A stretch of DNA of 64,000 nucleotides from IMGVR_UViG_3300011113_000640:248001-312000; one strand, 5' to 3'. Shown: positions 18,793-31,075, counted from the first letter of the stretch. Numbers and translations are program-made. Notes: generated by a model from the sequence alone, not told the origin.

Positions 18793-19878
18793 CTAGGCCG
18801 AAGCTTGCAAAATATACTTGCCGAAGCGGTTGTGGAACTCATCAAAGTTCTTGAGCTTGGTAGGCTGGAACGGAAGATTGTAGGTGGTAAGTGCAATACG
18901 GGCACCCATGACCACAAGCTCAGTCTCAAAGTTTTGCATCATGTACTTGAAGAAATGGTCGGCCATTTCATGGAACTGTTTGTCTGGCACTTTCTTCTCG
19001 ATAGCACCTTTGAGCTCGTAGCACATGCTGATAACCAGAGAGTACATGGCACTGACTTCTTTGACATTGAGATCTTTCTCTTTGCCGCTCAGGATGTCTT
19101 CGGGCTTGGGCATGCGTCCAGCAACCTTGCGGTGTGCCATGAATTTCACAGCCAGACCTTCGCCTACTGTACCTGCAATCAAGTTCATGATGGTGTCATC
19201 ATCGCCGTCTTCATCTTCAAGAATCTGGCTTACGAATGTCCATGACCTTGGTGTAGCAAAGGCACGGCTGGCTGATTTGGGATCAAAGTCATACAGGTCC
19301 TGCTTGGCAAAACTCAAATAACCAACCACGTCTTTGTGGATGTTGTTGTTGACTGCCCACTCTTGATATGACGCAAAGTCCACACGCATTTCTTGGTGTA
19401 TGAAACGATTTGCCAAGGGCGTGGGCATGCGATAGGTCACACCCTTGTCGCTTTCGCGATTACCGGCAGCAACCAAGACCACGTTTTCAGGCAAGAAGTA
19501 TTTGCCCACACGACGATTCAGGATCAACTGATAGGCCGCGGCTTGCACCGAAGGAGCGGCACTATTCATCTCATCCAAGAATAGCACCACGATGGGATAC
19601 TGGCTGGCAAATTCCGCAGTTGGCAAATCCACTGGCTCGGCCCAGTCCATTTTGCCCGACTCTTTGTTGTAAAACGGAATACCACGGATATCCGTAGGCT
19701 CCATCTGACCAAGTCGGAGATCGATCATGTAACCACCAAGTTCGGCAGCAATATCGGCCACCAGTTCACTTTTACCGATACCAGGAGGACCCCAGAGGAA
19801 TAAGGGGCGTTTTTTGCTGAATGCTTTGAGCAAGCTCTTACGGGCCTGCACCGATGTTACGGTTCTTGTTTCTGACAT
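18793..19878 (-). CDS. MoxR/dynein-related AAA+ ATPase
   Basis: Walker A GPPGIGKS, Walker B LFLDE, AAGN, LANRF, TPRSW. Confidence 0.95.
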   Translation of the reverse strand: MSETRTVTSVQARKSLLKAFSKKRPLFLWGPPGIGKSELVADIAAELGGYMIDLRLGQMEPTDIRGIPFYNKESGKMDWAEPVDLPTAEFASQYPIVVLFLDEMNSAAPSVQAAAYQLILNRRVGKYFLPENVVLVAAGNRESDKGVTYRMPTPLANRFIHQEMRVDFASYQEWAVNNNIHKDVVGYLSFAKQDLYDFDPKSASRAFATPRSWTFVSQILEDEDGDDDTIMNLIAGTVGEGLAVKFMAHRKVAGRMPKPEDILSGKEKDLNVKEVSAMYSLVISMCYELKGAIEKKVPDKQFHEMADHFFKYMMQNFETELVVMGARIALTTYNLPFQPTKLKNFDEFHNRFGKYILQASA

Positions 19879-19924
19879 GGCTGTGTCCTATAAAAAGTTG
19901 AAGAAATTTTACTACTATAGAACT

Positions 19925-19953
19925 ATTATACAACAAACGGAATTATTGGTCAA
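19925..19953 (-). promoter_or_regulatory. Sigma70-type early promoter
   Basis: TTGACC-N17-TATAAT; near copy of 16424-16452. Confidence 0.85.
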
Positions 19954-21091
19954 CCTGTGTGTAAGTGCCAATTTTATACAAGTGACTTAGATGCCCACGT
20001 AACCCTTCATACACGGTTCCGCTGTTGAACCATTGTTTGCCACAGATTCTTTCTAGTTCGTGTAAACTATTTACCCATTTGGTTTTGGCTTCAAATTCGC
20101 CTTCGATGAACCAGCGGCTTAACTCGTTCCATACAGCTCGCGTGGGCTTTTTGATTTGCCAGGTATCATGTTTCCAGTCTGGATAAATGCTGAAATTCAC
20201 TTCGCGATAATAGTCTTCGTCGTGAAAATTGGCAATGTTGTTGGTGTGCTTGATAAGATGTATCCGATTGGTTGACTTCAGCCAGTTTACCACCACGTGA
20301 CTTTGTTTGACCGCCAACTCGGGCAGATTTGGCGACCAATAAAAGTATTCATCGTTTTCCCAATACTCGCCAAGAATATCATTGGTAGGCAAGGTTCCGG
20401 TGGTCATGATCACATCTAAAAAAGCAAAATAAATGTTTGTATCATCTCTCAACAGTCGGGGTTTGTCTACCCCATAAACAAACCCAACCTTTTTGCCCCG
20501 GTGTAATAATTCATTGTGCTCGCGAAATATCTTGTGAAATCGCGATCGTACCATACAGGTAGGATCAAATCTAACTCCAGCGGTCCAGAACCAATCAGGA
20601 TTGTTGGCTGCTTCTAGTATGTTCTTGGTCCAGTCATATACATTGACCTTGATGTTGTGATCGGCCACCAACCTGCGAAGTTGCGGCAAGGCCTGCTGGA
20701 TTTCTCGGGTGTAGTAGCCTGGTGTAGTATCAGATCCCAAACGTGCATATTCTTGTTCTTCAGCTTCGAATGCTCCAAACATATAAACTTCGTCCAGCTT
20801 GATGTTGTTTTTGATAAAAGTTCGAAGGATATACCAGGAATCAACTCCTCCGGAATAAAACAGCACCAAATGATCATAGGCTTCTCGCAGTTGCAAGGCA
20901 CGTTGACGATACAGCTCTTCCAGAGCTACCGGAGGATCTAGGTCCCAGCGGGCAGTACCAAAGATACTGTCATGATAATCCCATTCTATATGTTGCCCAG
21001 AAGAGTTGGCTTCCAGTATGGCTTCTAGTTTGTTGAAAAAGGGCCGACCATTGCAGGTATAAACCCCTTTGTTGTGATACAAATATGTCAT
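19943..21091 (-). CDS. PP-loop (N-type ATP pyrophosphatase superfamily) protein of unknown function
   Basis: LFYSGGVDS PP-loop; YGVDKP. Confidence 0.7.
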   Translation of the reverse strand: MTYLYHNKGVYTCNGRPFFNKLEAILEANSSGQHIEWDYHDSIFGTARWDLDPPVALEELYRQRALQLREAYDHLVLFYSGGVDSWYILRTFIKNNIKLDEVYMFGAFEAEEQEYARLGSDTTPGYYTREIQQALPQLRRLVADHNIKVNVYDWTKNILEAANNPDWFWTAGVRFDPTCMVRSRFHKIFREHNELLHRGKKVGFVYGVDKPRLLRDDTNIYFAFLDVIMTTGTLPTNDILGEYWENDEYFYWSPNLPELAVKQSHVVVNWLKSTNRIHLIKHTNNIANFHDEDYYREVNFSIYPDWKHDTWQIKKPTRAVWNELSRWFIEGEFEAKTKWVNSLHELERICGKQWFNSGTVYEGLRGHLSHLYKIGTYTQVDQ

Positions 21092-22002
21092 TGGGCGATG
21101 TTGTTTCTATGTCTGTAAAGTAATTGTTCTAACAATCTCACATGTTTGTTATAATACATGGTCACAGGAACATTGTCAAATTGACTGGGTCGCATGTCAC
21201 TGAGACTTTGTATGGTAGCAAGGCCAATTTGACTGGTGGCCTGTGTCAGGATTCGTGCAATCTCATCCTGACGCTGAGATCGCATGGTACGATTGGCAAT
21301 CACAATATTGAACACTGTGGGTGCAGTTATGCCTTGTTCCGCCAGAGTTTTCACTGCCGGCAAGTCTGGATGACGCTTGGGGCAACTCATGGCCAACATT
21401 TGTAGCCGTGGATTTCTGGCTTTCATTTGTTGATAGTTGGCCACTCGTTCCAATACCATGTTCACAGAACCATCACCGGTCATCAGCAACAAGGCATCCA
21501 TGTTGCTTTTGAAAGGCACATACCGCACTGTGAAACCATAGCGTGATGCTAATTGTAAAGCGGTCAAGTGTGCGGCATTGCCTATGCCCACACCGCCCAC
21601 GACCAATTCACGCCGACCTTGTAGGCTGGCCACACCCTGACGTTCATCGCCGACATTGGTTATAACCCCCCAGCAGGCATCGCCCATGCTCCATACAGGA
21701 TCATAGTCCGTGAGATTCAAGCGTCCGGCCACGGTTTGTTCTACAAATTTGGGTGCCACGATGGCTACACGGTTCTGTGGTTGTTCGTCCATGTACCGCA
21801 CGGCCAAGATTTGTTCGCCGCCGGGCCGGAATTCCAATATAAAATTGTATTGTGATTGGTTGCGATTGGCCTGTTCTATAATTCGAAACATAGCCGGCGA
21901 TCCTGAGTGGCTGGCACTGTAAGGACTTACTATGGTTATAGTTTCTGCACTCAATACAAAATTTGACCAAAAGGTCAACATTATTAATGCTAATTTTATC
22001 AT
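21088..22002 (-). CDS. Bug/TctC-family periplasmic substrate-binding protein
   Basis: Signal peptide; ITIVSPY, RPGG, GVGIGNAAHL, YVPFK, RHPDLPAVKTLAEQG. Confidence 0.85.
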   Translation of the reverse strand: MIKLALIMLTFWSNFVLSAETITIVSPYSASHSGSPAMFRIIEQANRNQSQYNFILEFRPGGEQILAVRYMDEQPQNRVAIVAPKFVEQTVAGRLNLTDYDPVWSMGDACWGVITNVGDERQGVASLQGRRELVVGGVGIGNAAHLTALQLASRYGFTVRYVPFKSNMDALLLMTGDGSVNMVLERVANYQQMKARNPRLQMLAMSCPKRHPDLPAVKTLAEQGITAPTVFNIVIANRTMRSQRQDEIARILTQATSQIGLATIQSLSDMRPSQFDNVPVTMYYNKHVRLLEQLLYRHRNNIAQ

Positions 22003-22029
22003 TGTTTCTCCTAAATTTTTAATTTTTAA

Positions 22030-22155
22030 GAGCTTGCAGAAGAACTCTGCTACGGCTCGGCGTTATGTATTATGATACAATAAAGACATCACTATGTCAA
22101 GCGTCGATTTGAATGCCGACGTCGGAGTGATCCGGCGTTGCAGGATTTATTTATA
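22030..22155 (-). promoter_or_regulatory. Palindrome-rich regulatory region with TATAAATA late element (22148-22155) and TTGACA-N17-TATCAT (22072-22100)
   Basis: Motifs and five short inverted repeats read directly. Confidence 0.6.
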
Positions 22156-22158
22156 TGT

Positions 22159-22323
22159 TCAACGGCCTCGGCCGGCACTTCTTGTTGGAGGTTTTTTGCC
22201 TATCACAGGTGCCCGTTGTTTGACGGTTTTCCTTTCCACCTGTGGAGCATCATCATTTTCAGGATGATGGATTCCTTTTTTCTTGTCTGCGGCCTTCTTT
22301 AAGAAATCGCTCATTTTGCTCAT
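22159..22323 (-). CDS. Small basic protein (MSKMSDFLKKAADKKKG...)
   Basis: AAGGA SD; track's longer start lies within a tRNA. Confidence 0.7.
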   Translation of the reverse strand: MSKMSDFLKKAADKKKGIHHPENDDAPQVERKTVKQRAPVIGKKPPTRSAGRGR

Positions 22324-22340
22324 AGTTGTTTCCTTGTTAA

Positions 22341-22424
22341 TGGTGCCCCCGGGGTGAATCGAACACCCTTTGAGTTTCCTCGACGGATTACAAATCCGTT
22401 GCAATCCCACTATGCGACAGGGGC
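22341..22424 (-). tRNA. tRNA-Thr(UGU) with long class II-type variable arm
   Basis: Acceptor GCCCCTG/CGGGGGC-ACCA; anticodon arm ACGGA-TTTGTAA-TCCGT; variable region CGAGGAAACTCAAA; T arm GGGTG-TTCGATT-CACCC. Confidence 0.88.
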
Positions 22425-22437
22425 TTGGTTGTGATCA

Positions 22438-22908
22438 TTAAATGATTTTTCCTGTCGCAGCATCAACTGTCACAGGTGTGTGTTGCGCAAATGTAAATGT
22501 GTATGCAGGATTTTTCTGACTGGCCGTCTGTTTCAATGTGCAGTCAGACCAAACTTCTGTTATGCCGCTTTTGGTCAAAATCTCCACGGCCTGACTGCAA
22601 TTTATCGCAGGCGGATAAGTCCAGGGCTGACAATCCTTTACACGACTGTCATCTGGAAAGGGACCTGTGGCATGACCCGTGTTGCTGATCACAATGGCTG
22701 TAGGCCGATTGTCACGGGCACCCAGCCAGCAAGTGTAACAGTCACCACCATTGACACTGTTGGCCAACAGGAATTTACTTCCGTGTTGTACCAAATCAAT
22801 AACACTTTTGGCGCCCCAGACCTGCTGATCAAAACTCAACGTCGACATCAGTCCAACTTGTCTGACATAACTCAAAATGCGATTCAGTATGTTGTTAAAG
22901 ATTTTCAT
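22438..22908 (-). CDS. Hypothetical protein with PepSY-like C-terminus
   Basis: Ends VTVDAATGKII; start may be 22848. Confidence 0.6.
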   Translation of the reverse strand: MKIFNNILNRILSYVRQVGLMSTLSFDQQVWGAKSVIDLVQHGSKFLLANSVNGGDCYTCWLGARDNRPTAIVISNTGHATGPFPDDSRVKDCQPWTYPPAINCSQAVEILTKSGITEVWSDCTLKQTASQKNPAYTFTFAQHTPVTVDAATGKII

Positions 22909-23126
22909 GATTGCTCCGGGGATATTTGATCAGCCATGTCAATTGCAGGCTCTTTGTAGCCAGCTCTGCGTTTCAACAAGTCGATCCTGCGTTGAATTTT
23001 GGCCTGTTTCTTATTGGCCTGTGTTTTTTCTTTTAATTCGGTGAGTTGCTTTACACTGAGACTGACGATCCGGACCTCACCGTTTTTGGTGTAGCCAGGT
23101 TTTTTGCGATTGAGAGTTTTTGCCAT
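22905..23126 (-). CDS. Small basic hypothetical protein
   Basis: AGGA SD; ATGA overlap downstream. Confidence 0.75.
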   Translation of the reverse strand: MAKTLNRKKPGYTKNGEVRIVSLSVKQLTELKEKTQANKKQAKIQRRIDLLKRRAGYKEPAIDMADQISPEQS

Positions 23127-23181
23127 GATTGTGATCCTGTTTGATAATTTTACTTAGTGTTATCACGGCAAGTTTTTAAAA

Positions 23182-24033
23182 TTATTGACATTCCTGCCAG
23201 GTCCAAAATCCGTTGTAAAATTCCGGCAAACGCCGGGCTGTTGGATCCCACGAAAACAGGAATTTTTTTCCAGCCCGAGGAACTAGTAATTTTTGTGGCG
23301 GAGGCCAATCGGTGGTATAGCTTATGCCTAGACATGGCAATCCTTGATAACTGGTATGATCTTTGACAACCACCGTGGCAGATTTGTATTCTGTGAGATC
23401 CAAAACGAACTCAATTTTTTGATCACAGGTGCCGGGTCCAATCTTGACTATGCCGTCAAATGTTTGACTGGGTTTTATCAAGTTTGTGTTGTTCACAGCA
23501 TCGTAAAAACCTCGGGGCAAGGAATCATAGTTCAGCATGACTCTTGGTTGGCAGTCTGATAAATTGTTATCGAGCTGACCTTCGTAGACCGCAACATCTA
23601 TGGCCCAGACATCAGGCACACTGACGTAAGGTGTTTTGAATATCTGGTTGGCATGACTCCAGATTTTTTTCATGGTTGAGTTGGTTATAAACTGACATCC
23701 TAAGGGTTCGCACAGAAAAATGTCAATATTTTGGGGAACATCGTCGGGAGTCAGTGAGAGAAAATCAGCAGTGCTCACTGAGTGCCTGCCATGGTATCCT
23801 GCGTGATCCAGGATGTCACGGGTCAACGCAGTTCTGGCCGATCTAACGTCAACTCCGTAGTAGTGGCTGGCACCAAATTCAAGACAGTATGCACCCAGCA
23901 AACCAACGCCGGTGCCTACTTCGAATACAGTTCGATCTTTGACAAGATTTTTAAGGATTTCTCGATACCAATTAGATCTAGGTGTATCATTGATGTAGGT
24001 CAAGGCCACATTTACTTCAGGATGTCTTATCAT
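23182..24033 (-). CDS. Class I SAM methyltransferase, PRMT-like
   Basis: INDTPRSNWY, VFEVGTGVGLL, DIFLCEPLG resemble PRMT motifs. Confidence 0.75.
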   Translation of the reverse strand: MIRHPEVNVALTYINDTPRSNWYREILKNLVKDRTVFEVGTGVGLLGAYCLEFGASHYYGVDVRSARTALTRDILDHAGYHGRHSVSTADFLSLTPDDVPQNIDIFLCEPLGCQFITNSTMKKIWSHANQIFKTPYVSVPDVWAIDVAVYEGQLDNNLSDCQPRVMLNYDSLPRGFYDAVNNTNLIKPSQTFDGIVKIGPGTCDQKIEFVLDLTEYKSATVVVKDHTSYQGLPCLGISYTTDWPPPQKLLVPRAGKKFLFSWDPTARRLPEFYNGFWTWQECQ

Positions 24034-24619
24034 GATCTAGGTTGACCCATGTGGTTATTTCTCCTATGCAAGTATTGGATTTAGAATTTATACAAAGTTC
24101 TAGCTGGCTGATAATATCTTGGACATTGACGCCATGGCCAGTCCAAGTAGGTCTGGAACGACCTATGGGAGTATCCAGTCTATCTACTGTTATCAAACTG
24201 GTACGAAAATTTACCTGGCCAATTCGAAAGGCCTGAGTCCATTGTAGACTTGCATGTTTGAGAGCCGCCTTGTTGGAATTGTAGCTTTCCCAACCCGGAA
24301 AAGGTGCAGATGTATCTTCACTGCCCACCCCACCTATGTTTATGATATGTCCACCCTTGCCACGTTCTTGCCACAGCATAGCCACTTCGGTCAGCAGCTG
24401 AGTTTGACCATATAGTGTTTGGCTTTGACCAAACACTCCATCATAGGCGTTGTTGACGAATACATCATAATTCAAACTGAGTTCGGCTATCTTAGCACGC
24501 TGGGTCAAAATATCATGACCGGTTGATCTACTGACACTGGTGGCATCAAACTTTTTAACCAATTCTAAACCCAGACCTTGGTTGCCACCTGTGACTAGAA
24601 AAGTTTTGAGATTGGCCAT
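24017..24619 (-). CDS. Short-chain dehydrogenase/reductase
   Basis: TGGNQGLG, VNNA, YNSNK. Confidence 0.85.
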   Translation of the reverse strand: MANLKTFLVTGGNQGLGLELVKKFDATSVSRSTGHDILTQRAKIAELSLNYDVFVNNAYDGVFGQSQTLYGQTQLLTEVAMLWQERGKGGHIINIGGVGSEDTSAPFPGWESYNSNKAALKHASLQWTQAFRIGQVNFRTSLITVDRLDTPIGRSRPTWTGHGVNVQDIISQLELCINSKSNTCIGEITTWVNLDHDKTS

Positions 24620-24625
24620 TTAATT

Positions 24626-24701
24626 TGGTACACCCAAGGGGATTCGAACCCCTGTTGCAGCCGTGAAAGGGCCGAGTCCTGGGCCTCTAGACGATGGGTG
24701 C
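24626..24701 (-). tRNA. tRNA-Glu(UUC)
   Basis: GCACCCA/TGGGTGT-ACCA; loop CTTTCAC; GTTCGAATC. Confidence 0.95.
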
Positions 24702-24704
24702 ATG

Positions 24705-24863
24705 TTACTTCATTCTCAACTGCTGAGCAAATTTTTTGACAATCAGATTTGCCTTCTTGTTGGATTCTGTGATGCTTCTGCTGGCAGCCGATCGTTTTTC
24801 GGTCTTGGTCCACTGTCCAGCGATAGTTCTGCTTAGTTCACCTGCACTTTGACGCTTTGCCAT
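24705..24863 (-). CDS. 52-aa basic protein (MAKRQSAGELSRTIAGQW...), not in ORF track
   Basis: Hand-translated; fills gap between rpoZ-like gene and tRNA-Glu. Confidence 0.6.
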   Translation of the reverse strand: MAKRQSAGELSRTIAGQWTKTEKRSAASRSITESNKKANLIVKKFAQQLRMK

Positions 24864-24865
24864 GT

Positions 24866-25087
24866 TTATTTTACCTTTATCAAATAATCAGTCATATTAA
24901 AAGTGCCACTCTGTACTTCTTTGAGTGCATCAATGGGCGTGACCCAAGAGTTGGTTTCTCGAGCCCGGCGCTTCATTTCTCTCAGTCGTTGCGCAGCAGC
25001 GATCACAAGATCATATCGGCCGCCGGCATAGGCCACACAGCGTTCGGTATCAATTTCACTGCTACGACTTTCGATTCTGGTGCTCAT
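24866..25087 (-). CDS. rpoZ: RNA polymerase omega subunit-like protein
   Basis: RYDLVIAAAQRLRE and PIDALKEV match omega conserved regions; AAGGAG SD. Confidence 0.8.
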   Translation of the reverse strand: MSTRIESRSSEIDTERCVAYAGGRYDLVIAAAQRLREMKRRARETNSWVTPIDALKEVQSGTFNMTDYLIKVK

Positions 25088-25109
25088 GACTTCTCCTTGT
25101 AAAAAGTTA

Positions 25110-25152
25110 ATTATACACTAAAATATGGCGCTGGTCAAACACTTTATAAATA
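25110..25152. promoter_or_regulatory. Divergent promoters: minus TTGACC-N17-TATAAT (25110-25138) and plus TATAAATA (25145-25152)
   Basis: Consensus matches. Confidence 0.8.
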
Positions 25153-25156
25153 TCCA

Positions 25157-25873
25157 ATGTGCCCGCAACACCTTAGTTCACATTTTGCCAATCAAGAACT
25201 TAATTGGATTCAGACTGACTCATATGAACAATATCAAAAAAATCTCATTGAAAAACAAGATGAACTAGAACAGTTTGGTTGGATCGATCAAACTTTTACC
25301 TATCGATATAACAGTCAAGGATTCAGAAGTGCCGAGTTTGAAGAATCTGTTCCCAGTGCGATGTTTCTTGGATGTAGCCACACGCTGGGAGTAGGATTAC
25401 CTATGGAAGCTACCTTTTCGCACATAGTCAGCACCAGTTTAAATCTTAAAAATTTCAATCTGGGTGTTCCGGGTAGTAGCAATGATACTGCATTCCGTTT
25501 GGCGCATTATTACATTCCTCGATTGAAACCAACCATTGTGGTTTTTCTATCAACTGAACGAACCAGATTTGAATTGTTTACAGAAAACAACGAAAACGAT
25601 ATTTTATCCTATAACAACATGACCAATTCTCTTCAATTTGTCAGAGAAGAGTTGAAGCTATTTTATCGTCATTGGATAATGAATAACAACAACGTTGATA
25701 TGCATTATGCAAAAAATGTTGGAGCCATTCAACAGCTATGTTCTGCAAACAATATCAAATTTTATCACAGAGAATTTTTAAAGTTTCCGTTGATAGACAA
25801 AGCAAGAGATCTAGCGCACTATGGAATTAAATCTAACAATATTGTCGCCAAGAAAATTCTAGCAGATCTTTAA
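25157..25873 (+). CDS. SGNH hydrolase-like protein
   Basis: NSQGFRS, FLGCSHT, NLGVPGSS, DLAHYG. Confidence 0.75.
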   Translation: MCPQHLSSHFANQELNWIQTDSYEQYQKNLIEKQDELEQFGWIDQTFTYRYNSQGFRSAEFEESVPSAMFLGCSHTLGVGLPMEATFSHIVSTSLNLKNFNLGVPGSSNDTAFRLAHYYIPRLKPTIVVFLSTERTRFELFTENNENDILSYNNMTNSLQFVREELKLFYRHWIMNNNNVDMHYAKNVGAIQQLCSANNIKFYHREFLKFPLIDKARDLAHYGIKSNNIVAKKILADL

Positions 25874-26808
25874 CCTATTAGCTTGGCCAGGTGTGATCTA
25901 TTGTAGCGAGCAATAGTTTGTAAATTGTCAATGATGTCAATGGTAGACATTGTTTCTTTCATGGCTTGCCATCTAGCCGGCCCTTCGAGTCGATCGTAGC
26001 TTTCATCCCAACAACTACTATAAGTTTGGAATCCAATATCTTGTAACCTTTTTAAATAATTTCGCGGACCATAAACCAACACAGGCTTGCCAGCCATGAT
26101 AGGCCTTACAGTTTTTTCAGTGGGAAAGAATGTATCACCCAGTGTATATGTTTCGGCAACAATTTCAATTTGGAATTGATTGTAGTAACCTAGTATGCCG
26201 CTGTTGGTCTTTGGCTCTCTGACAAATTGATCTCTAACCCTGTGTCCGTCAATGCTGGTAACTGGACAACAAGTAAGCCACCCAATAATGTCGGTGTTGA
26301 GCCAATCATCGGGTTTTTCTAAATTAATTGGAGCAGTTTCTTTGATCCAAGGCGGCGCCTCGTCTGTGTTCATAACACTTAACAATGTGTTTCCTTGTTG
26401 CCAAAGATCATAGAGTATTCTTGCTCGAGCAAAAGTTCTGCGACCCATAAAGTAGCCAAACAAGCAAGCACCATCGGCAACAGGTGCAACATCGGTCCAG
26501 TACTTGCGGCTCATTTCAAAAAAATGACTAAGGGAGACTTTACCTATGTTTAAATTTGCGTACGGTGTTTGCTCGTGCATGTTAGGATTTCTAGCAATAC
26601 TGATTGTTTTGGGGTCTCTGCCGGTGGCAACACAGTGTTGATTTAACATGTCCACAATGCCCAGTGCTTGCATGCTAGGACCTTCATAACGGAAATCTAT
26701 TTCGACATGGGCAGAAGGATCAATATTGCTGAGACAATTTTTAACCTCCGCTGGGTTGCTCCAAGAATCTCCACACACTCTTAAAGGAATAACAATCGGT
26801 TTATTCAA
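25870..26808 (-). CDS. Putative glycosyltransferase-like 'ET..TEKT.RP' family protein
   Basis: VAETY..FFPTEKTVRP..GFQTY..WDESYD. Confidence 0.6.
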   Translation of the reverse strand: MNKPIVIPLRVCGDSWSNPAEVKNCLSNIDPSAHVEIDFRYEGPSMQALGIVDMLNQHCVATGRDPKTISIARNPNMHEQTPYANLNIGKVSLSHFFEMSRKYWTDVAPVADGACLFGYFMGRRTFARARILYDLWQQGNTLLSVMNTDEAPPWIKETAPINLEKPDDWLNTDIIGWLTCCPVTSIDGHRVRDQFVREPKTNSGILGYYNQFQIEIVAETYTLGDTFFPTEKTVRPIMAGKPVLVYGPRNYLKRLQDIGFQTYSSCWDESYDRLEGPARWQAMKETMSTIDIIDNLQTIARYNRSHLAKLIG

Positions 26809-26855
26809 ACTACTCTTTGCTTTCTTTTTTCAATATTTAATAATTATAGTTAATC

Positions 26856-26932
26856 TGGTGCCCCGGGAAGGATTCGAACCTTCAACAGCTCCCTTCTGAG
26901 GAGAGTGCGTCTACCTGTTGCGCCACCGGGGT
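26856..26932 (-). tRNA. tRNA-Leu(CAG) with short variable loop and A1:C72 mismatch
   Basis: ACCCCGG/CCGGGGC-ACCA; CTCTC-CTCAGAA-GGGAG; variable loop CTGTT. Confidence 0.88.
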
Positions 26933-26938
26933 TGACCT

Positions 26939-27529
26939 TTACGTTACTTGCGTGGTACCGTTGCCGTTTTTAAAACCAATCTCGCCACCTTCTGCTTCAA
27001 TCCTTTTGATCACATCTTCAAACAGGATAGGAGCAAAGTCGGTTTGTTCCACGCACACGCAATGATAACGAACATCAACTATGTCGGTGATCTTGCCATT
27101 GAATCCTGGCAACATCACCCGGTTGGCATGCAAGTGCCCGTGGATGTTGACACCAAAGCGACCAAGGCTTTCTGAGTGAATAGGAATATGGCTGAGTATC
27201 ATGCCATTCATCACATGGTATCCACGCAGGCTACGGAAGTAAGGAGTGTAATCCTCATCCTTAAAGATATCGTGATTACCACGGATAAGAATCTTGTCAC
27301 CATTGAGTCTATTCATAATAGGTAAACTCTTGCGGTTGATCACTACATCACCCAAGTGATATACTTTATCGTTTGGACGCACACGCTCGTTCCAGGCCCG
27401 GACCATGAACTCGTCCATTTCGTTGGGATCTGTCCAAGGGCGAAGTTTTGTAACTCCATCGTTACGTGTGAAGCGACATACACCTGCGTGACCAAAGTGC
27501 GTATCGCTGACTAAAAATACTGCTGGCAT
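26939..27529 (-). CDS. Calcineurin-like metallophosphoesterase
   Basis: SDTHFGH, HLGD, GNHD, HGHLH. Confidence 0.92.
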   Translation of the reverse strand: MPAVFLVSDTHFGHAGVCRFTRNDGVTKLRPWTDPNEMDEFMVRAWNERVRPNDKVYHLGDVVINRKSLPIMNRLNGDKILIRGNHDIFKDEDYTPYFRSLRGYHVMNGMILSHIPIHSESLGRFGVNIHGHLHANRVMLPGFNGKITDIVDVRYHCVCVEQTDFAPILFEDVIKRIEAEGGEIGFKNGNGTTQVT

Positions 27530-27554
27530 AAGTGCCTCCTTTCTTTGTAAAACA

Positions 27555-27628
27555 TGGCGCCGGTCTAAGGAATCGAACCTCAATTAACGGTTTTGGAGAC
27601 CGCTGTAATGCCATTATACCAGACCGAC
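27555..27628 (-). tRNA. tRNA-Trp(CCA)
   Basis: GTCGGTC/GACCGGC-GCCA; GCGGT-CTCCAAA-ACCGT. Confidence 0.93.
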
Positions 27629-27634
27629 CAAACT

Positions 27635-27712
27635 TGGAAGTGAGGGTGAGATTCGAACTCACGGCTTTAGGGATTTGCAGTCCCTTGCATTGGGCCACTC
27701 TGCCACCTCACT
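27635..27712 (-). tRNA. tRNA-Cys(GCA)
   Basis: AGTGAGG/CCTCACT-TCCA (U73); AGGGA-CTGCAAA-TCCCT. Confidence 0.95.
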
Positions 27713-27795
27713 GTAATAAGCTCATAACAAAAATGTATTGGATCCCTGGCAAAATCGCATATCGAATGCGATATATATTACTAGGAGTTATACAC

Positions 27796-27957
27796 ATGGA
27801 ATACATTTTAACCTTATTTGTTTACTTCAACGGAGATCTCATCCGTAAACTGGAACAACCAGTGGCCACTGCGGCCGTATGTCAACAACTCAGTGCAGGT
27901 CTCAACTTCCGTGATCCTGCTGTGACAGCCTTTGCCACTTGTCGTCCCAGATCATAA
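27796..27957 (+). CDS. 53-aa protein antisense within tRNA cluster
   Basis: AGGAG SD before ATG 27796; fills the gap between tRNA-Cys and tRNA-Met. Confidence 0.6.
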   Translation: MEYILTLFVYFNGDLIRKLEQPVATAAVCQQLSAGLNFRDPAVTAFATCRPRS

Positions 27958-27958
27958 T

Positions 27959-28032
27959 TGGTTGCGGGTGACGGAGTTGAACCGCCAACTGGAGCTTATG
28001 AGACTCCCGAGATACCATTTCTCTAACCCGCG
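27959..28032 (-). tRNA. tRNA-Met(CAU), initiator-like
   Basis: CGCGGGT/ACCCGCA-ACCA with C1:A72 mismatch; loop CTCATAA. Confidence 0.9.
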
Positions 28033-28038
28033 TCTGTT

Positions 28039-28212
28039 TCACTGTTCCTGTTCCATTCTACGGAACTGTTCCTGCGCCCGAATCATAGCAGACGCACGAT
28101 CGATCTTGTTCTGAAACAGTTGTTGCTTTTGTGCTTCGGTCAAGAATGCCGAACTCACATCATAAGCCTGTTTCACAATAGCGTCGTTGAGTTTTTTGTA
28201 ATCAATTGACAT
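28039..28212 (-). CDS. 57-aa hypothetical protein (MSIDYKKLNDAIVKQ...)
   Basis: AAGGA SD; start downstream of terminator. Confidence 0.65.
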   Translation of the reverse strand: MSIDYKKLNDAIVKQAYDVSSAFLTEAQKQQLFQNKIDRASAMIRAQEQFRRMEQEQ

Positions 28213-28234
28213 CTTTTTCCTTTCCTCTATAAAA

Positions 28235-28269
28235 TAAAAAACCCCGGAGTGTTTAGTTCCAGGGCTTTT
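28235..28269 (-). terminator. Intrinsic terminator of putative attenuator
   Basis: AAAAGCCCTGGA-ACTAAACAC-TCCGGGGTTTTTT. Confidence 0.85.
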
Positions 28270-28291
28270 GAATATCGTATGATGTTTCGTA

Positions 28292-28393
28292 CTATTCCGT
28301 GCCCTGAATCTCATCCTCGCAAATCTGCCATAGACCAACCACCTCATTGAAGTTGGGTTGTGGTACAAGATAGGTCACTTTGCGATTCAACAT
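28292..28393 (-). CDS. Putative 33-aa leader peptide MLNRKVTYLVPQPNFNEVVGLWQICEDEIQGTE
   Basis: ATG 6 nt after -10 box; carries TTCAGGGC complementary to the terminator 5' arm. Confidence 0.65.
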   Translation of the reverse strand: MLNRKVTYLVPQPNFNEVVGLWQICEDEIQGTE

Positions 28394-28399
28394 AGTAGT

Positions 28400-28428
28400 A
28401 TTATATAGAGTTATTTATATCTTGTCAA
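28400..28428 (-). promoter_or_regulatory. Composite promoter: TTGACA-N17-TATAAT with nested TATAAATA (28412-28419)
   Basis: Exact consensus matches. Confidence 0.9.
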
Positions 28429-28443
28429 CCGGGTTTGGTCAAC

Positions 28444-28474
28444 AAAAAAGCCCCCGGGGGAGCTTTTTTTTTTT
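28444..28474. terminator. Probable bidirectional terminator after porin gene
   Basis: AAAAAAGCCCCCGGGGGAGCTTTTTTTTTT. Confidence 0.6.
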
Positions 28475-28490
28475 GGATCACTTTTAAAAA

Positions 28491-29231
28491 TTAATTAAAA
28501 GTTTTTGTCAAGCCAACTACCACGGCATTCTTGTAGAGCTTTTGACCGCTCACAGTGTTTGCAGTTTCAAAAGTTCTTGTTGTGCCAGAGTTGGTGAAAT
28601 ACTTTACACTGACGTCAAAGTCTTTGGGTAGACTGTAAACAAAACCAGCATTGATGTCATTGTAATCGTAGGCTGTGCTGTTGGCCACATTGGTACGACC
28701 ATAGTGTGCTACAACAGCCAGATTCTTGATCACAGGAACTGGTAACTTGCCATCTGCTTGCACGTAGGTTGTGCCTTGAGCATTGGCTGTACCGAAATAG
28801 CCATCTCCCAAGGTTCTGCTATACTTGGCAGAAATGATGTCTTTGTAACCTAGGCCGACATAGCCTTCATAGGTGTCAAAGTTTGAACCAGTTTTTGCTG
28901 AAGTGGTGGCACGTGGATAGAAATAGTTGTAGCTACCGATGTCGATCGAGATGCCCTTGAAGATTTCTTTCTTGTAACCAGCGTAGAGATCACTCTCTAC
29001 ACCTGCACCATTGGTGTAGACTTGGCTAGAAACACTGCTGTTCCAGTTACCAATGTACAAGCCACTCTTGTGTGCATAGTCGATGCCGCCCTGAACTGCA
29101 GGAGCATTTTGGGTTTGGCTAACACCGCGGAAACGGTAGTCGCTGGTCAAACCTAAATTGCCGGTGAGTTGAGCTTGAGCCGAGGCAACAAAGCCAGCGG
29201 ACAAGGCCAATGCTAATAATAATTTTTTCAT
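28491..29231 (-). CDS. TorF-family putative porin (TIGR02001-like)
   Basis: Signal peptide; SDYRFRGVSQT, PAVQGGIDY, GNWNSSV, DLYAGY; ends KTFN. Confidence 0.9.
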   Translation of the reverse strand: MKKLLLALALSAGFVASAQAQLTGNLGLTSDYRFRGVSQTQNAPAVQGGIDYAHKSGLYIGNWNSSVSSQVYTNGAGVESDLYAGYKKEIFKGISIDIGSYNYFYPRATTSAKTGSNFDTYEGYVGLGYKDIISAKYSRTLGDGYFGTANAQGTTYVQADGKLPVPVIKNLAVVAHYGRTNVANSTAYDYNDINAGFVYSLPKDFDVSVKYFTNSGTTRTFETANTVSGQKLYKNAVVVGLTKTFN

Positions 29232-29307
29232 GCTTGAAGTTTCCTTTTAAAAGAATGCTGGGTGATCACCCAACTCTTTATTTAGTGGTTTTTACTTAGT
29301 GACCAAC

Positions 29308-29335
29308 AAAAAAGCCTGATTTCTCAGGCTTTTTA
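29308..29335. terminator. Bidirectional intrinsic terminator
   Basis: AAAAAAGCCTGA-TTTC-TCAGGCTTTTT. Confidence 0.85.
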
Positions 29336-29355
29336 TTTTGAAACAACAAAAACTA

Positions 29356-29910
29356 TTAGAAATTCCGAGTATAATTAAAATTTATAATTTTTTGATCTAC
29401 ATCACCTTGCACACGATCATATCTTACACCAATTGTATCTTTTTTGGTAACAGCATAACCTACTCCGGCTCTCCAGGTGCGAGTAGTATCGTTCATGGCA
29501 GTGTTAAATGGAGTGCGAAAACGCCAGCCAGCACGAACAGTAAAGCCTGATGAGCCAAATGGAGCGGTAACCCCGGGTTCTACGCTATAGTATCCATAAC
29601 TGCCAGTGCTGATATATCGTTCGCCAACACCTGTGCGAGTGTACAAGGTCGCAAACTTTGTCGGCAACAATCCAGTTACTCCGGCTTCAAGGCGAGTGCT
29701 GGCCAATGCATTGCTACCATTTTGGTTGATTTGTAAAACTCCTACATCACCAAGAAAGTTTTTGTTGATGTTTTCTCTGACTGCCAAGCTCCAACTGTTT
29801 TGATCTGCTGATTTGACATTGTCGACATTGCCATATTCGACCGTGGCGGATCCTGCGTGGACCAAACCTGCGGCAAACACCAAACTTAGAATAGTTAATA
29901 GTTTTTTCAT
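29356..29910 (-). CDS. Small outer-membrane beta-barrel protein
   Basis: Signal peptide; alternating beta pattern; C-terminal FNYTRNF beta-signal. Confidence 0.8.
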   Translation of the reverse strand: MKKLLTILSLVFAAGLVHAGSATVEYGNVDNVKSADQNSWSLAVRENINKNFLGDVGVLQINQNGSNALASTRLEAGVTGLLPTKFATLYTRTGVGERYISTGSYGYYSVEPGVTAPFGSSGFTVRAGWRFRTPFNTAMNDTTRTWRAGVGYAVTKKDTIGVRYDRVQGDVDQKIINFNYTRNF

Positions 29911-29977
29911 AATTGTCCTTAAAGGTAATTTAATGATATCGTATCTAGATTTAGTTATGACTCAAGATTAACGGATC

Positions 29978-30003
29978 AAAAAAAACCCGCCGAAGCGGGT
30001 TTT
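29978..30003 (-). terminator. Intrinsic terminator after tmRNA
   Basis: AAAACCCGC-TTCG-GCGGGTTTTTTTT. Confidence 0.92.
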
Positions 30004-30009
30004 GACATT

Positions 30010-30280
30010 TTTGGTAACAAGGCATGTCTGCCCCGGAGATCATGCCGCTAAGGCAAAGACCTCGTCGTTAGCTGCGTTTGCAGTTATCATTTTGCTTCTA
30101 CGACCAGGCTTTCCCAGTCCTAACGGGTTTCGCATTCCCGTGTTGCCGTCCGCATTGGCTCACCATGTCGATCCTGATTCATCCCCACCCAAGCATACTG
30201 GACAATACACTTGGGTGGAGATGCTGGGATTTGCACCCAGGTCCATAGTGCCTTCACTTGGAAGGGATTACAACAATTCG
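30010..30280 (-). ncRNA. ssrA: Circularly permuted two-piece tmRNA; tag ANAANDEVFALAA* at 30040-30081
   Basis: T arm and 3' acceptor CATCTCCACC precede 5' acceptor GGGGATG (G3:U70); intervening hairpin 30187-30216; ATAACT-GCA resume context; outer ends approximate. Confidence 0.92.
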
Positions 30281-30287
30281 AAAAACG

Positions 30288-30545
30288 TTAACTCAACTTA
30301 CGTGCCATTTGAGGCGCTGGCGTAAACGAATTCACTATAGCCAAATAACCGTCGGCTGACGCTTCAGTGCTGAATAATCTTATAAAATTGTCTGAGTAAG
30401 TGATTCCGTCTGAATTTGTAGTCGTCTGAGTATTAACTGACATGGTAACCGCTGCCACGGCTGGATCAGTGAGATATGCACTTAATTGATTCGTTTCTGC
30501 TTCAGTGCGAGCACGTCCGTAAATAACTTCTGTAAAATATAGCAT
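30288..30545 (-). CDS. Hypothetical protein
   Basis: AAGGA SD; TATAAATA at 30570-30577. Confidence 0.7.
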   Translation of the reverse strand: MLYFTEVIYGRARTEAETNQLSAYLTDPAVAAVTMSVNTQTTTNSDGITYSDNFIRLFSTEASADGYLAIVNSFTPAPQMARKLS

Positions 30546-30573
30546 GGCAATTCCTTATATTAATGTTGTTATT

Positions 30574-30603
30574 TATACGAACTCAAGATATACGAACTCA
30601 AGA
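30574..30603. repeat. Perfect 2 x 15-bp tandem repeat TATACGAACTCAAGA
   Basis: Read directly. Confidence 0.95.
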
Positions 30604-30629
30604 CTTATGTTTGGATTAACAATCAAATC

Positions 30630-30722
30630 CTACTTGCCAAACAAATGAGCCACAATGCCCATGCCCACAAATACTGTCATGGCCGCAACGGCCGCCCAGG
30701 GGATGTTTTTTAATATGTTCAT
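30630..30722 (-). CDS. 30-aa hydrophobic peptide MNILKNIPWAAVAAMTVFVGMGIVAHLFGK
   Basis: Hand-translated; ATGA overlap with upstream peptide. Confidence 0.55.
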   Translation of the reverse strand: MNILKNIPWAAVAAMTVFVGMGIVAHLFGK

Positions 30723-30802
30723 TGCTCGTCCTGATGTTCGTTGATCCACATGATACCATAACAAACTACCACAGCCAACAAGGCAAAAAATATCAACCAC
30801 AT
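30719..30802 (-). CDS. 27-aa hydrophobic peptide MWLIFFALLAVVVCYGIMWINEHQDEQ
   Basis: Hand-translated; 2 nt after previous stop. Confidence 0.55.
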   Translation of the reverse strand: MWLIFFALLAVVVCYGIMWINEHQDEQ

Positions 30803-30804
30803 GA

Positions 30805-30996
30805 TTAATTATAGCCTTTTATGTGATTGTTGTCAATCGGGGGATTTCCTCGGGCCATGACATTTTCTAACTGCCGGGCACGATCACGTTCGGGCGGCAA
30901 CGGACCACAACCCAGTCTTGCCCACTCGTCTTCGGAGTAGTAATAGCGTTCCACGGGCGGTTTCTTTTGCTGTTCCACGGTCATCGTATTTACCAT
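30805..30996 (-). CDS. Small hypothetical protein
   Basis: Follows tRNA-Ile2. Confidence 0.65.
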   Translation of the reverse strand: MVNTMTVEQQKKPPVERYYYSEDEWARLGCGPLPPERDRARQLENVMARGNPPIDNNHIKGYN

Positions 30997-31000
30997 GTTT

Positions 31001-31075
31001 TGGTAGGCCTTGAAAGAATTGAACTTTCACTCCATCGATTATGAGTCGATTGCTTTACCATTAAGCTAAAGGCCC
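31001..31075 (-). tRNA. tRNA with CAU anticodon, Ile2 (lysidine)-type body
   Basis: GGGCCTT/AAGGCCT-ACCA; ATCGA-CTCATAA-TCGAT resembles bacterial tRNA-Ile2. Confidence 0.85.

Follow-up and report, generated by a model that had tools for sequence, protein, structure and literature searches.

A covarying leader RNA ahead of solute-binding protein and PP-loop enzyme genes in a lineage of freshwater jumbo phages

What does a palindrome-rich spacer of 156 nucleotides (nt) do ahead of a solute-binding protein gene and an enzyme gene in a phage genome? The spacer lies in a 64,000-nt stretch of DNA (the window) corresponding to bases 248001-312000 of the IMG/VR virus record IMGVR_UViG_3300011113_000640, a genome of 320,541 base pairs (bp) with an estimated completeness of 93%. 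On the minus strand of the window, where the leader, its genes and their promoters are all located, a 54-amino acid (aa) open reading frame (ORF) ending at 22159 is followed by the spacer (22158-22003), a 304-aa ORF and a 382-aa ORF. A preliminary description had put forward the spacer, or leader, as either an unclassified cis-regulatory RNA or an array of operators. The hairpins listed there, the TATAAATA box and an embedded TTGACA-N17-TATCAT promoter are all present where described, and the comparison of homologues upholds the RNA, through covariation in five helices, a bias toward G·U pairs and the lack of a matching Rfam family, while disfavouring the operator array. Judged from this comparison, the leader is almost certainly a real structured RNA and very probably cis-regulatory; as a tentative reading, it may act in cis on the mRNA of a late operon, most plausibly as a sensor of a ligand.

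A leader RNA conserved in its base pairing

The window sequence could not decide the structure by itself because its fold barely beats those of shuffled sequences (minimum free energy -32.7 kcal/mol, z = -1.99, with 10 of 200 shuffles folding equally well), and it is the homologues that decide. A search with the protein of the 382-aa ORF, a PP-loop enzyme, led to ten related viral loci in which conservation of the spacer equals that of the conserved genes, with 69-87% nucleotide identity in the leader against 56-68% in the 304-aa ORF, a gene of the Bug/TctC family. A profile search with the spacer also found the leader ahead of genes other than Bug. Motif scans and covariance models collected 42 and then 86 distinct leaders in viral contigs (set A7), to which a metagenome scan added at least 80 (set A8), for at least 166 distinct sequences; the metagenome set is independent, having taken no part in model building. 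The leader of the window scores 116.7-120.1 bits against the covariance model (22024-22157).

The structured core, as delimited by the covariance model and the homologues, runs from GCAACGCC to AGC over approximately 110 nt (22032-22141). It was modelled with 21 base pairs in five helices, namely the hairpins P1, P3, P4 and P5 and a long-range helix of 3 bp, P2. Under this model 95.1% of the cells in the viral set are paired, against 74.7% in shuffles (none of 500 reached the observed value), and 95.6% against 75.1% in the metagenome set, with slid controls at 35-48% and 36-47%, respectively. Changes on both sides of a pair occur in 19 pairs of the viral set and 17 of the metagenome set, and in a mutual-information (MI/APC) scan supplied with no structure the proposed pairs occupy the top 11 and the top 9 ranks, respectively. 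The covariation and the scan together describe a conserved aptamer-like structure, as riboswitches have.

Four of the five hairpins noted earlier covary, and the fifth is replaced by the long-range helix, which closes a three-way junction. The first of them, CGGA-TCAC-TCCG (22134-22123), is the upper stem of P1 and is conserved with compensatory changes; one of its pairs is found as GC 62, AU 18 and GU 5 and another as GU 29, CG 23 and AU 11. The whole P1 hairpin, ACGCCGGA-TCAC-TCCGACGT (22119-22138), extends this stem by 3 bp beyond an invariant C·A mismatch, and the end pair is A-U in 84 leaders, G-C in 2 and broken in none. P2 links CGG directly after P1 (22116-22118) with CCG ahead of P5 (22053-22055) and is paired in 100% of the viral and 99.6% of the metagenome set. 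Its middle pair is GC 81 and AU 5 in the former and GC 76 and AU 4 in the latter, with no one-sided changes, and a regular-expression parse that does not depend on the alignment found P2 paired in 40 of 40 cases.

Three further hairpins of the preliminary description correspond to P3, P4 and P5, all of which covary. P3, GACAT-AGTG-ATGTC (22085-22098), shows two-sided change in all five pairs, with 97-98% of cells paired and one pair found as CG 38, GC 35 and AU 13. It is joined to P4 by the strand UUUAU (22080-22084; family consensus UUUAC), in which TTTA is at least 97% invariant. P4, TGTAT-CATA-ATACA (22066-22079), has two-sided change in all four counted pairs and 88% of cells paired, and P5, GCAGA-GTTCT-TCTGC (22036-22050), in all five pairs with 95% paired, one pair being CG in 42 and UA in 41; an invariant AGC follows at 22032-22034. 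A leader peptide was also considered and rejected, as its 8-codon ORF starts from the 3' strand of P3 only where P3 reads ATGTC and is not conserved.

The remaining hairpin, GTCGG-CATTCAAA-TCGAC, is present to the letter at 22120-22103, but its bases serve P1, P2 and a further, tentative helix, P2a. This hairpin and a CGUC/GACG hairpin proposed by RNAalifold are invariant, hence untestable by covariation, and compete with the covarying P2 and P2a; both were set aside. P2a, to which the mutual-information scan pointed, would pair C-GACGC (22101-22106) with ACGCC-G (22058-22062; CGCCG within AACGCCG), the second ACGCC of the leader, around an invariant A·C mismatch. Only its outer pair varies, with five pair types and pairing in 82% of the viral and 70% of the metagenome set. 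The four RACGY words remarked on earlier are indeed present and can be read as the four strands of two look-alike helices, because the P1 extension and P2a pair them: ACGCC with GACGU and GACGC with ACGCC, each invariant and each with a C·A mismatch. In all, about 28 invariant positions lie outside the five covarying helices, many of them in the P1 extension, P2a and P0. A possible closing helix of 2 bp, between 5' GC and 3' AGC, is likewise invariant and hence gives no covariation either way.

Across the pairs, 63 G·U combinations stand against 16 A·C, an indication that pairing is selected on the sense-strand RNA and not in a DNA operator. It is therefore extremely unlikely that the palindromes are an array of transcription-factor sites over the embedded sigma-70 promoter. 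Two of them, P3 and P4, do coincide in part with the -35 and -10 hexamers of the window, as had been described, and CCGACGTCGG, which occurs nowhere else in the genome, forms a perfect palindrome of 10 bp. However, the stem sequences vary freely with pairing kept, more than a protein recognising a specific DNA sequence would allow, G·U is accepted on one strand only, the promoter is absent from 50 of the 86 viral leaders, and CCGACGTCGG is simply the junction of the 3' strand of P1 and the 5' strand of P2. A lack of covariation among homologues, or conservation limited to the promoter hexamers, had been named beforehand as grounds for abandoning the RNA; what the homologues display is strong covariation, and the -35 hexamer itself is replaced in those same 50 leaders.

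Comparison with Rfam 15 over window positions 19500-23000, at E-values up to 10, left the leader unmatched and returned only a tRNA and a chance match to eiav_FSE (E 1.1), which falls inside the PP-loop gene at 20458-20485 and outside the leader. The leaders of eight diverse loci, searched at E-values up to 1, had no Rfam match either, and literature searches found nothing on the leader. Among 185,579 species genomes scanned with a strict exact pattern, which diverged versions may escape, there were two true matches (L228 on ctg31 and L190 on ctg90), both in one metagenome-assembled genome (MAG) labelled Haliscomenobacter sp. EUL_031. These contigs, at 44-45% GC, are probably mis-binned phage DNA, since they carry the PP-loop, TctC, ABC binding-protein and phage-specific genes of the lineage. 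The leader was not found in 151 sampled genomes from the order of a Rhodoferax MAG. It thus represents a previously unclassified RNA family of a known kind, the riboswitch-candidate type, that is restricted to a phage lineage as far as searched.

Within this lineage the leader is generally single. Each of its conserved words is unique in the window genome, and a scan with the model found exactly one copy there, as in each of five further genomes, 262-354 kb in size. Three contigs (L052, L161 and L180) hold two copies, each ahead of a binding-protein gene. The leader is retained at loci whose PP-loop proteins have diverged down to 25-30% identity. Two departures from this pattern were observed: three loci (L003, L004 and L005) carry a partial second copy consisting of the 3' two-thirds (L004:1529-1641, nhmmer E 1.9e-08), which precedes a 53-aa ORF approximately 1.4 kb upstream of the full leader, and one locus with a 69% identical PP-loop protein (L011:3540-3720) is without the leader, its PP-loop gene being preceded by a spacer of unrelated sequence and a gene for a small membrane protein.

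Promoters and the position of the leader

The late promoter of phage T4 reads TATAAATA and is centred near -10. The same box at 22148-22155 is, by its sequence, a T4-type late promoter, and its activity in driving the leader is something we infer. The predicted late start falls at or adjacent to the G at 22141, since this is where the geometry of the T4 late box would put it and where conservation of the leader exactly begins. The sequence TAA(A/G)TA stands 6-7 nt ahead of GCAACGCC in 85 of the 86 distinct viral leaders, and in the 120-nt stretches ahead of 366 ORFs of the genome there are 81 occurrences of TAAATA, against 10.4 expected (eightfold). A capsid gene of the T4 Gp23 type in the same genome also speaks for a T4-type late promoter. 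At the other end, the start codon follows P5 at a median distance of 33 nt across the family; in the window the Shine-Dalgarno (SD) sequence AGGAG (22008-22012) lies 5 nt ahead of the ATG at 22002. The position of the leader, with the box 6-7 nt upstream and the ribosome binding site (RBS) a median of 33 nt downstream, fits that of a 5' untranslated region (UTR) with predicted transcript ends.

A second promoter, of sigma-70 type, is embedded in the helices themselves. In the window it reads TTGACA (22100-22095)-N17-TATCAT (22077-22072), matching the consensus at 11 of 12 positions, and the 5' strand of P3 coincides with its -35 hexamer, while P4 contains the -10 hexamer; its activity, too, is predicted. 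Its occurrence is bimodal: TTGACA is present in 36 of 86 leaders, 35 of which score at least 9/12 (most 10-12), and the other 50 score 8/12 or less, the -35 hexamer having been replaced by sequences that still form the P3 hairpin. A sigma-70-like promoter between P5 and the start codon is seen in several relatives (L060, L172, L137 and L064) and in some leaders of the low-scoring group. Transcripts of the genes can therefore probably be made either including the folded domain or lacking it. In the window phage and about 40% of its relatives, transcripts made by the host polymerase from the embedded promoter would begin within the leader, beyond the reach of its control.

These promoters bear on the possibility that the leader has a role in cis that involves no effector, in which it would stabilise the 5' end, be processed (as a self-cleaving ribozyme or a target of RNase), offer ribosomes a stand-by site or enhance the translation of late transcripts, or would be a small RNA of its own with read-through into the operon. 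Its place as the first part of the predicted late transcript would suit such a role, as would the promoters after P5 in several relatives or inside the element in 36 of 86, which make the genes expressible without the leader, and the fact that no expression platform was found. We nevertheless consider it quite unlikely, given that about 28 invariant positions and a three-way junction kept down to 25% protein identity are excessive for a simple stabiliser, that no terminator follows the leader and the RBS comes as little as about 33 nt later, and that no ribozyme family in Rfam matches.

Genes behind the leader and its possible function

The first gene behind the leader in the window (21088-22002) encodes a putative periplasmic solute-binding protein of 304 aa with a signal-like N-terminal segment. 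It matches the Pfam family TctC (PF03401) with an E-value of 8.6e-10 and 39 bits, against a cut-off of 27, over profile positions 107-226 of 274; in a genome-wide search the match has an E-value of 1.6e-10. Orthologues in related phages are 43-69% identical, and divergence in the gene goes far beyond that in the regions on either side. Its stop codon is overlapped through ATGA by the start of the PP-loop gene (19943-21091); the SD sequence and the coupled two-gene unit are as first described.

The second gene product, of 382 aa, has a pyrophosphate-binding loop of the SGGxDS form, here SGGVDS. Across 13 homologues, some as little as 22% identical, S79, G81, D83 and S84 never vary, and conservation of G80 is at least 90%. 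Its AlphaFold2 model has a pLDDT of 82, and the best Foldseek matches are carbapenam and beta-lactam synthetases, LarE, AsnB, NAD synthetase and TilS, with E-values of 5e-4 to 5e-3 and probabilities of 0.94-1.0, but with low TM-scores of 0.25-0.37. No profile in Pfam (E-values up to 5), NCBIfam, PHROG or the PDB matched, and relatives in the ESM Atlas are 100% viral and fall in unnamed clusters, with weak QueC and Asn_synthase marks in distant ones. By its motif and modelled fold, the protein is classed in the PP-loop ATP pyrophosphatase superfamily, outside any named family.

Across the family, the leader precedes functionally related but non-homologous genes, a further feature of riboswitches, though at one locus per genome. 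In the viral set the first gene is TctC in 31 cases, TRAP DctP in 19, the PP-loop gene in 7 and an ABC binding protein in 4; in the metagenome set, among the matches listed, the corresponding counts are 34, 12, 14 and 1. Other first genes encode TctA, porins and a few enzymes (TauD-type and other 2-oxoglutarate oxygenases, a tryptophan-halogenase-like protein, an AMP-binding enzyme and a ketosynthase with a hexapeptide transferase), and the gene context also includes SBP_bac_8 with a permease. Where at least three complete ORFs could be read downstream (46 leaders), a transport part was present in 40, the PP-loop gene in 31 and both in 29. The preliminary description had considered a lone Bug protein unusual in a phage; TctC is in fact the commonest gene behind the leader. 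The window genome has two further TctC-family genes outside the window (G000:C1:313512-314306 and G000:C1:10878-11561), three in all, and no TctA. Lone phage-borne binding proteins thus appear to be common in the lineage. By its lack of TctA, the window genome has no complete tripartite tricarboxylate transporter; some relatives do carry TctA behind the leader.

Cargo of a tailoring type was observed at several loci: a tryptophan-halogenase-like flavoprotein (L136:384-2021), a TauD-type dioxygenase (L166:3943-5010), an Asp/Asn beta-hydroxylase-like protein (L138:1084-1725) and a ketosynthase with a hexapeptide acyltransferase (L064:8846-10718). This cargo and the beta-lactam-synthetase-like fold of the PP-loop protein suggest that the operon could modify a metabolite and not merely import it.

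Such variable cargo recalls the PeSL elements, repeated regulatory promoter/stem-loop DNA that serves as a recombination anchor in the hyperplastic regions of T4-like phages (PMC2839356, PMC4122927). That the leader is a mobile promoter/terminator cassette of this type, conserved for cargo-swapping recombination, would agree with the variability of the genes behind it, with a Bug gene much more diverged than its flanks, with the presence of an early-type promoter and hairpins, and with the partial second copy in L003-L005. It is very unlikely all the same: the leader is single in the window genome and the five large genomes rather than dispersed in many copies, it is about twice as long and has a long-range helix, its compensatory changes and G·U asymmetry reflect selection on RNA pairing, and 50 of 86 leaders have lost the -35 hexamer and kept the hairpin. 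A function as RNA is, moreover, compatible with recombination, as the leader may double as an anchor.

A small-molecule sensor is favoured, tentatively, because of the junction-rich invariant core, the proximity of the RBS, and the presence of non-homologous uptake genes together with an adenylating enzyme. In this proposal, the TAAATA-type promoter would give rise to a late operon transcript starting at or adjacent to the G of GCAACGCC (22141), whose first 110 nt would fold with P1 stacked on P2, and P2, with the tentative P2a, closing a three-way junction with P3 and P4. P5 would follow the junction, with the RBS about 33 nt further on. Binding of a small molecule by this fold would then set the translation or the stability of the genes downstream, which in the window encode the solute-binding protein and a carboxylate-adenylating type of PP-loop enzyme, and in its relatives other uptake parts. 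Cis-regulation, ligand binding and both transcription starts are what we infer here from structure, position and gene content.

Several observations count against a ligand sensor. No expression platform, whether a terminator or an RBS-sequestering fold, was found: no terminator was seen after the leader, and pairing of the SD sequence with the leader, at -6.35 kcal/mol, hardly differs from the -6.03 kcal/mol of shuffled SD stretches. The variety of genes downstream is variety at one type of locus, and thus weaker evidence than many independent loci would give, because each near-complete genome (320-354 kb) has one copy. The two further TctC genes of the window genome have no leader. The nearest solved relatives of the binding proteins bind glutamate, polyamines or GABA, and assorted carboxylates, so that no single transported ligand is obvious. 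As for the late promoter, the Pfam model Sigma70_r2 had no match in the genome, a model that is unsuited to gp55, and no search aimed at gp55 or gp33 was made; no RNA sequencing runs carrying the phage DNA were found, and the transcript ends remain predictions. The two look-alike invariant helices with their C·A mismatches, finally, would suit a dimeric RNA-binding protein about equally well.

This last point leads to the main rival, in which the leader is an operator whose two look-alike helices are bound by an RNA-binding protein of phage or host origin, perhaps dimeric, with activation or repression of the late mRNA at the level of translation. The phage T4 proteins RegA, gp32 and gp43 act in this manner on their targets. 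The base of P1, P2 and P2a are invariant in sequence, beyond what pairing requires, and the repetition in the leader is pseudo-twofold. One copy per genome, the lack of an alternative fold that sequesters the SD sequence, and the confinement of the leader to the phage lineage as far as searched would all be in keeping with such an operator. On the other hand, no candidate protein was identified, the neighbours vary on both sides, upstream ones included, so that no linked regulator gene is evident, and the size and junction-rich architecture of the leader exceed those of the known T4 translational operators. A protein operator is, on this evidence, unlikely, if by no means negligible, and the small-molecule sensor is retained as the working proposal.

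The carrier phages and comparison with known systems

The carriers of the leader family are a lineage of freshwater jumbo phages. The window genome encodes a major capsid protein of the T4 Gp23 type (Pfam PF07068, E 4.6e-98), the nearest cultured relatives of which, at 68-71% identity, are those of the jumbo phages Phosso of Sinorhizobium, 2.275.O of Vibrio and PA5oct of Pseudomonas. Among GenBank phages, the 2.8-kb region of the leader and its genes had no DNA match and the PP-loop protein no tblastn match; only the capsid gene matches cultured phages. Sequencing runs that carry the phage DNA are lake and other freshwater metagenomes. Nothing resembling human sequence, no departure from the usual genetic code and no disrupted toxin gene was encountered. 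In one relative (L129) the tmRNA fits the betaproteobacterial tmRNA family RF01850, making a betaproteobacterial host likely.

Upstream of the leader, the minus strand of the window holds a tRNA cluster (22341-31075) with seven genes, for Thr, Glu, Leu, Trp and Cys and two with CAT anticodons, among which lies a tmRNA gene (29949-30305) with the tag ANAANDEVFALAA. The tRNA-Thr gene directly upstream of the leader region is given 84 nt by ARAGORN (22341-22424) and 81 nt by Rfam (22344-22424); at 22341-22424 it exceeds the standard length of a class I tRNA. On the other side, the PP-loop gene is followed on the same strand by a gene for a MoxR-like AAA ATPase (18793-19878), which is probably its own transcription unit because a sigma-70-type promoter, TTGACC-N17-TATAAT (19925-19953, 11/12), lies within the last codons of the PP-loop gene.

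The leader combines several unusual traits: it is confined, as far as searched, to phage DNA, has predicted drive from a late promoter, contains in many members a host-type promoter within its helices, and is tied to uptake machinery borne by phages and a viral PP-loop enzyme outside the named families. Its comparative support, from at least 166 distinct sequences, five helices replicated in an independent set and a defined predicted 5' end, goes far beyond that of most orphan motifs, and its gene neighbourhood is coherent, comprising outer-membrane porins, three unrelated families of periplasmic binding protein, a carrier in the membrane and a PP-loop enzyme specific to viruses. It raises the questions of what phage solute-binding proteins carry, what the PP-loop enzyme makes and whether phages own metabolite sensors, and a promoter lying within RNA helices presents a case in which promoter choice would decide whether an mRNA carries its control domain. 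The leader could represent, though we rate this as somewhat doubtful, a riboswitch class that exists only in phages and senses a metabolite on transcripts from a late promoter, timing the production of phage-encoded porins, binding proteins and a carboxylate-adenylating PP-loop enzyme. Should this be true, a virus would sense the chemistry of the infected cell directly and re-plumb its nutrient uptake, and the look-alike helices with their C·A mismatches would amount to a ligand-binding architecture of a new type. At 110 nt, the RNA has a size suited to in-line probing and to solving its structure.

Among known systems, the likeness to classical riboswitches lies in an aptamer-like fold before non-homologous transport genes and an enzyme, with conserved nucleotides at the junction and the RBS near. 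Unlike them, the leader has no detected expression platform, occurs once per genome and only in phages, stands behind a late phage promoter, often has a second promoter inside the fold, and is a proposed ligand binder. The phage T4 genes e, soc and I-TevI offer a precedent for promoter-dependent mRNA structures, in which a single hairpin masks the RBS on a longer early transcript. As proposed for the leader, a structure near the RBS is present on the transcript of one promoter only and couples timing to translation; in the leader, however, it is the late transcript that would be longer, and what it carries is a complex conserved domain without visible pairing to the RBS. With respect to cargo, cyanophages carry pstS, a periplasmic phosphate-binding protein gene under control of the Pho regulon at the DNA level. 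Like the genes of the window, it is the binding protein alone of a host uptake system, presumably boosting uptake during infection, whereas the binding proteins considered here belong to the tripartite tricarboxylate transporter, TRAP and ABC families and stand behind a phage-specific RNA leader. PeSL elements share with the leader an early promoter and hairpins, variable cargo alongside and a possible part as recombination anchor, but are short, present in many copies and built of a terminator plus a promoter, in contrast to a single-copy element of about 110 nt with five to six helices, including a long-range one.

To our knowledge, structured regulatory RNAs of phages' own are rare, and the few known, manA and wcaG, remain unexplained after fifteen years. 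These two motifs (Rfam RF01745 and RF01761) are riboswitch candidates of T4-like cyanophages (PMC2864571) and provide the closest comparison: like the leader, they are structured, covarying RNAs of T4-type phages, known chiefly from metagenomes; they lie in the 5' UTRs of host-derived metabolic genes, a position predicted for the leader too, and they are proposed to tune host metabolism through a ligand as yet unassigned. They differ from the leader in sequence and structure, as no Rfam match connects them, and in habitat and probable host, marine cyanophages as opposed to freshwater phages of a likely betaproteobacterial host. The leader also differs in what it would control, uptake parts and a PP-loop enzyme, and in its confinement to phages as far as searched, with no true bacterial genome among the carriers found, whereas manA is also present in gamma-proteobacteria.

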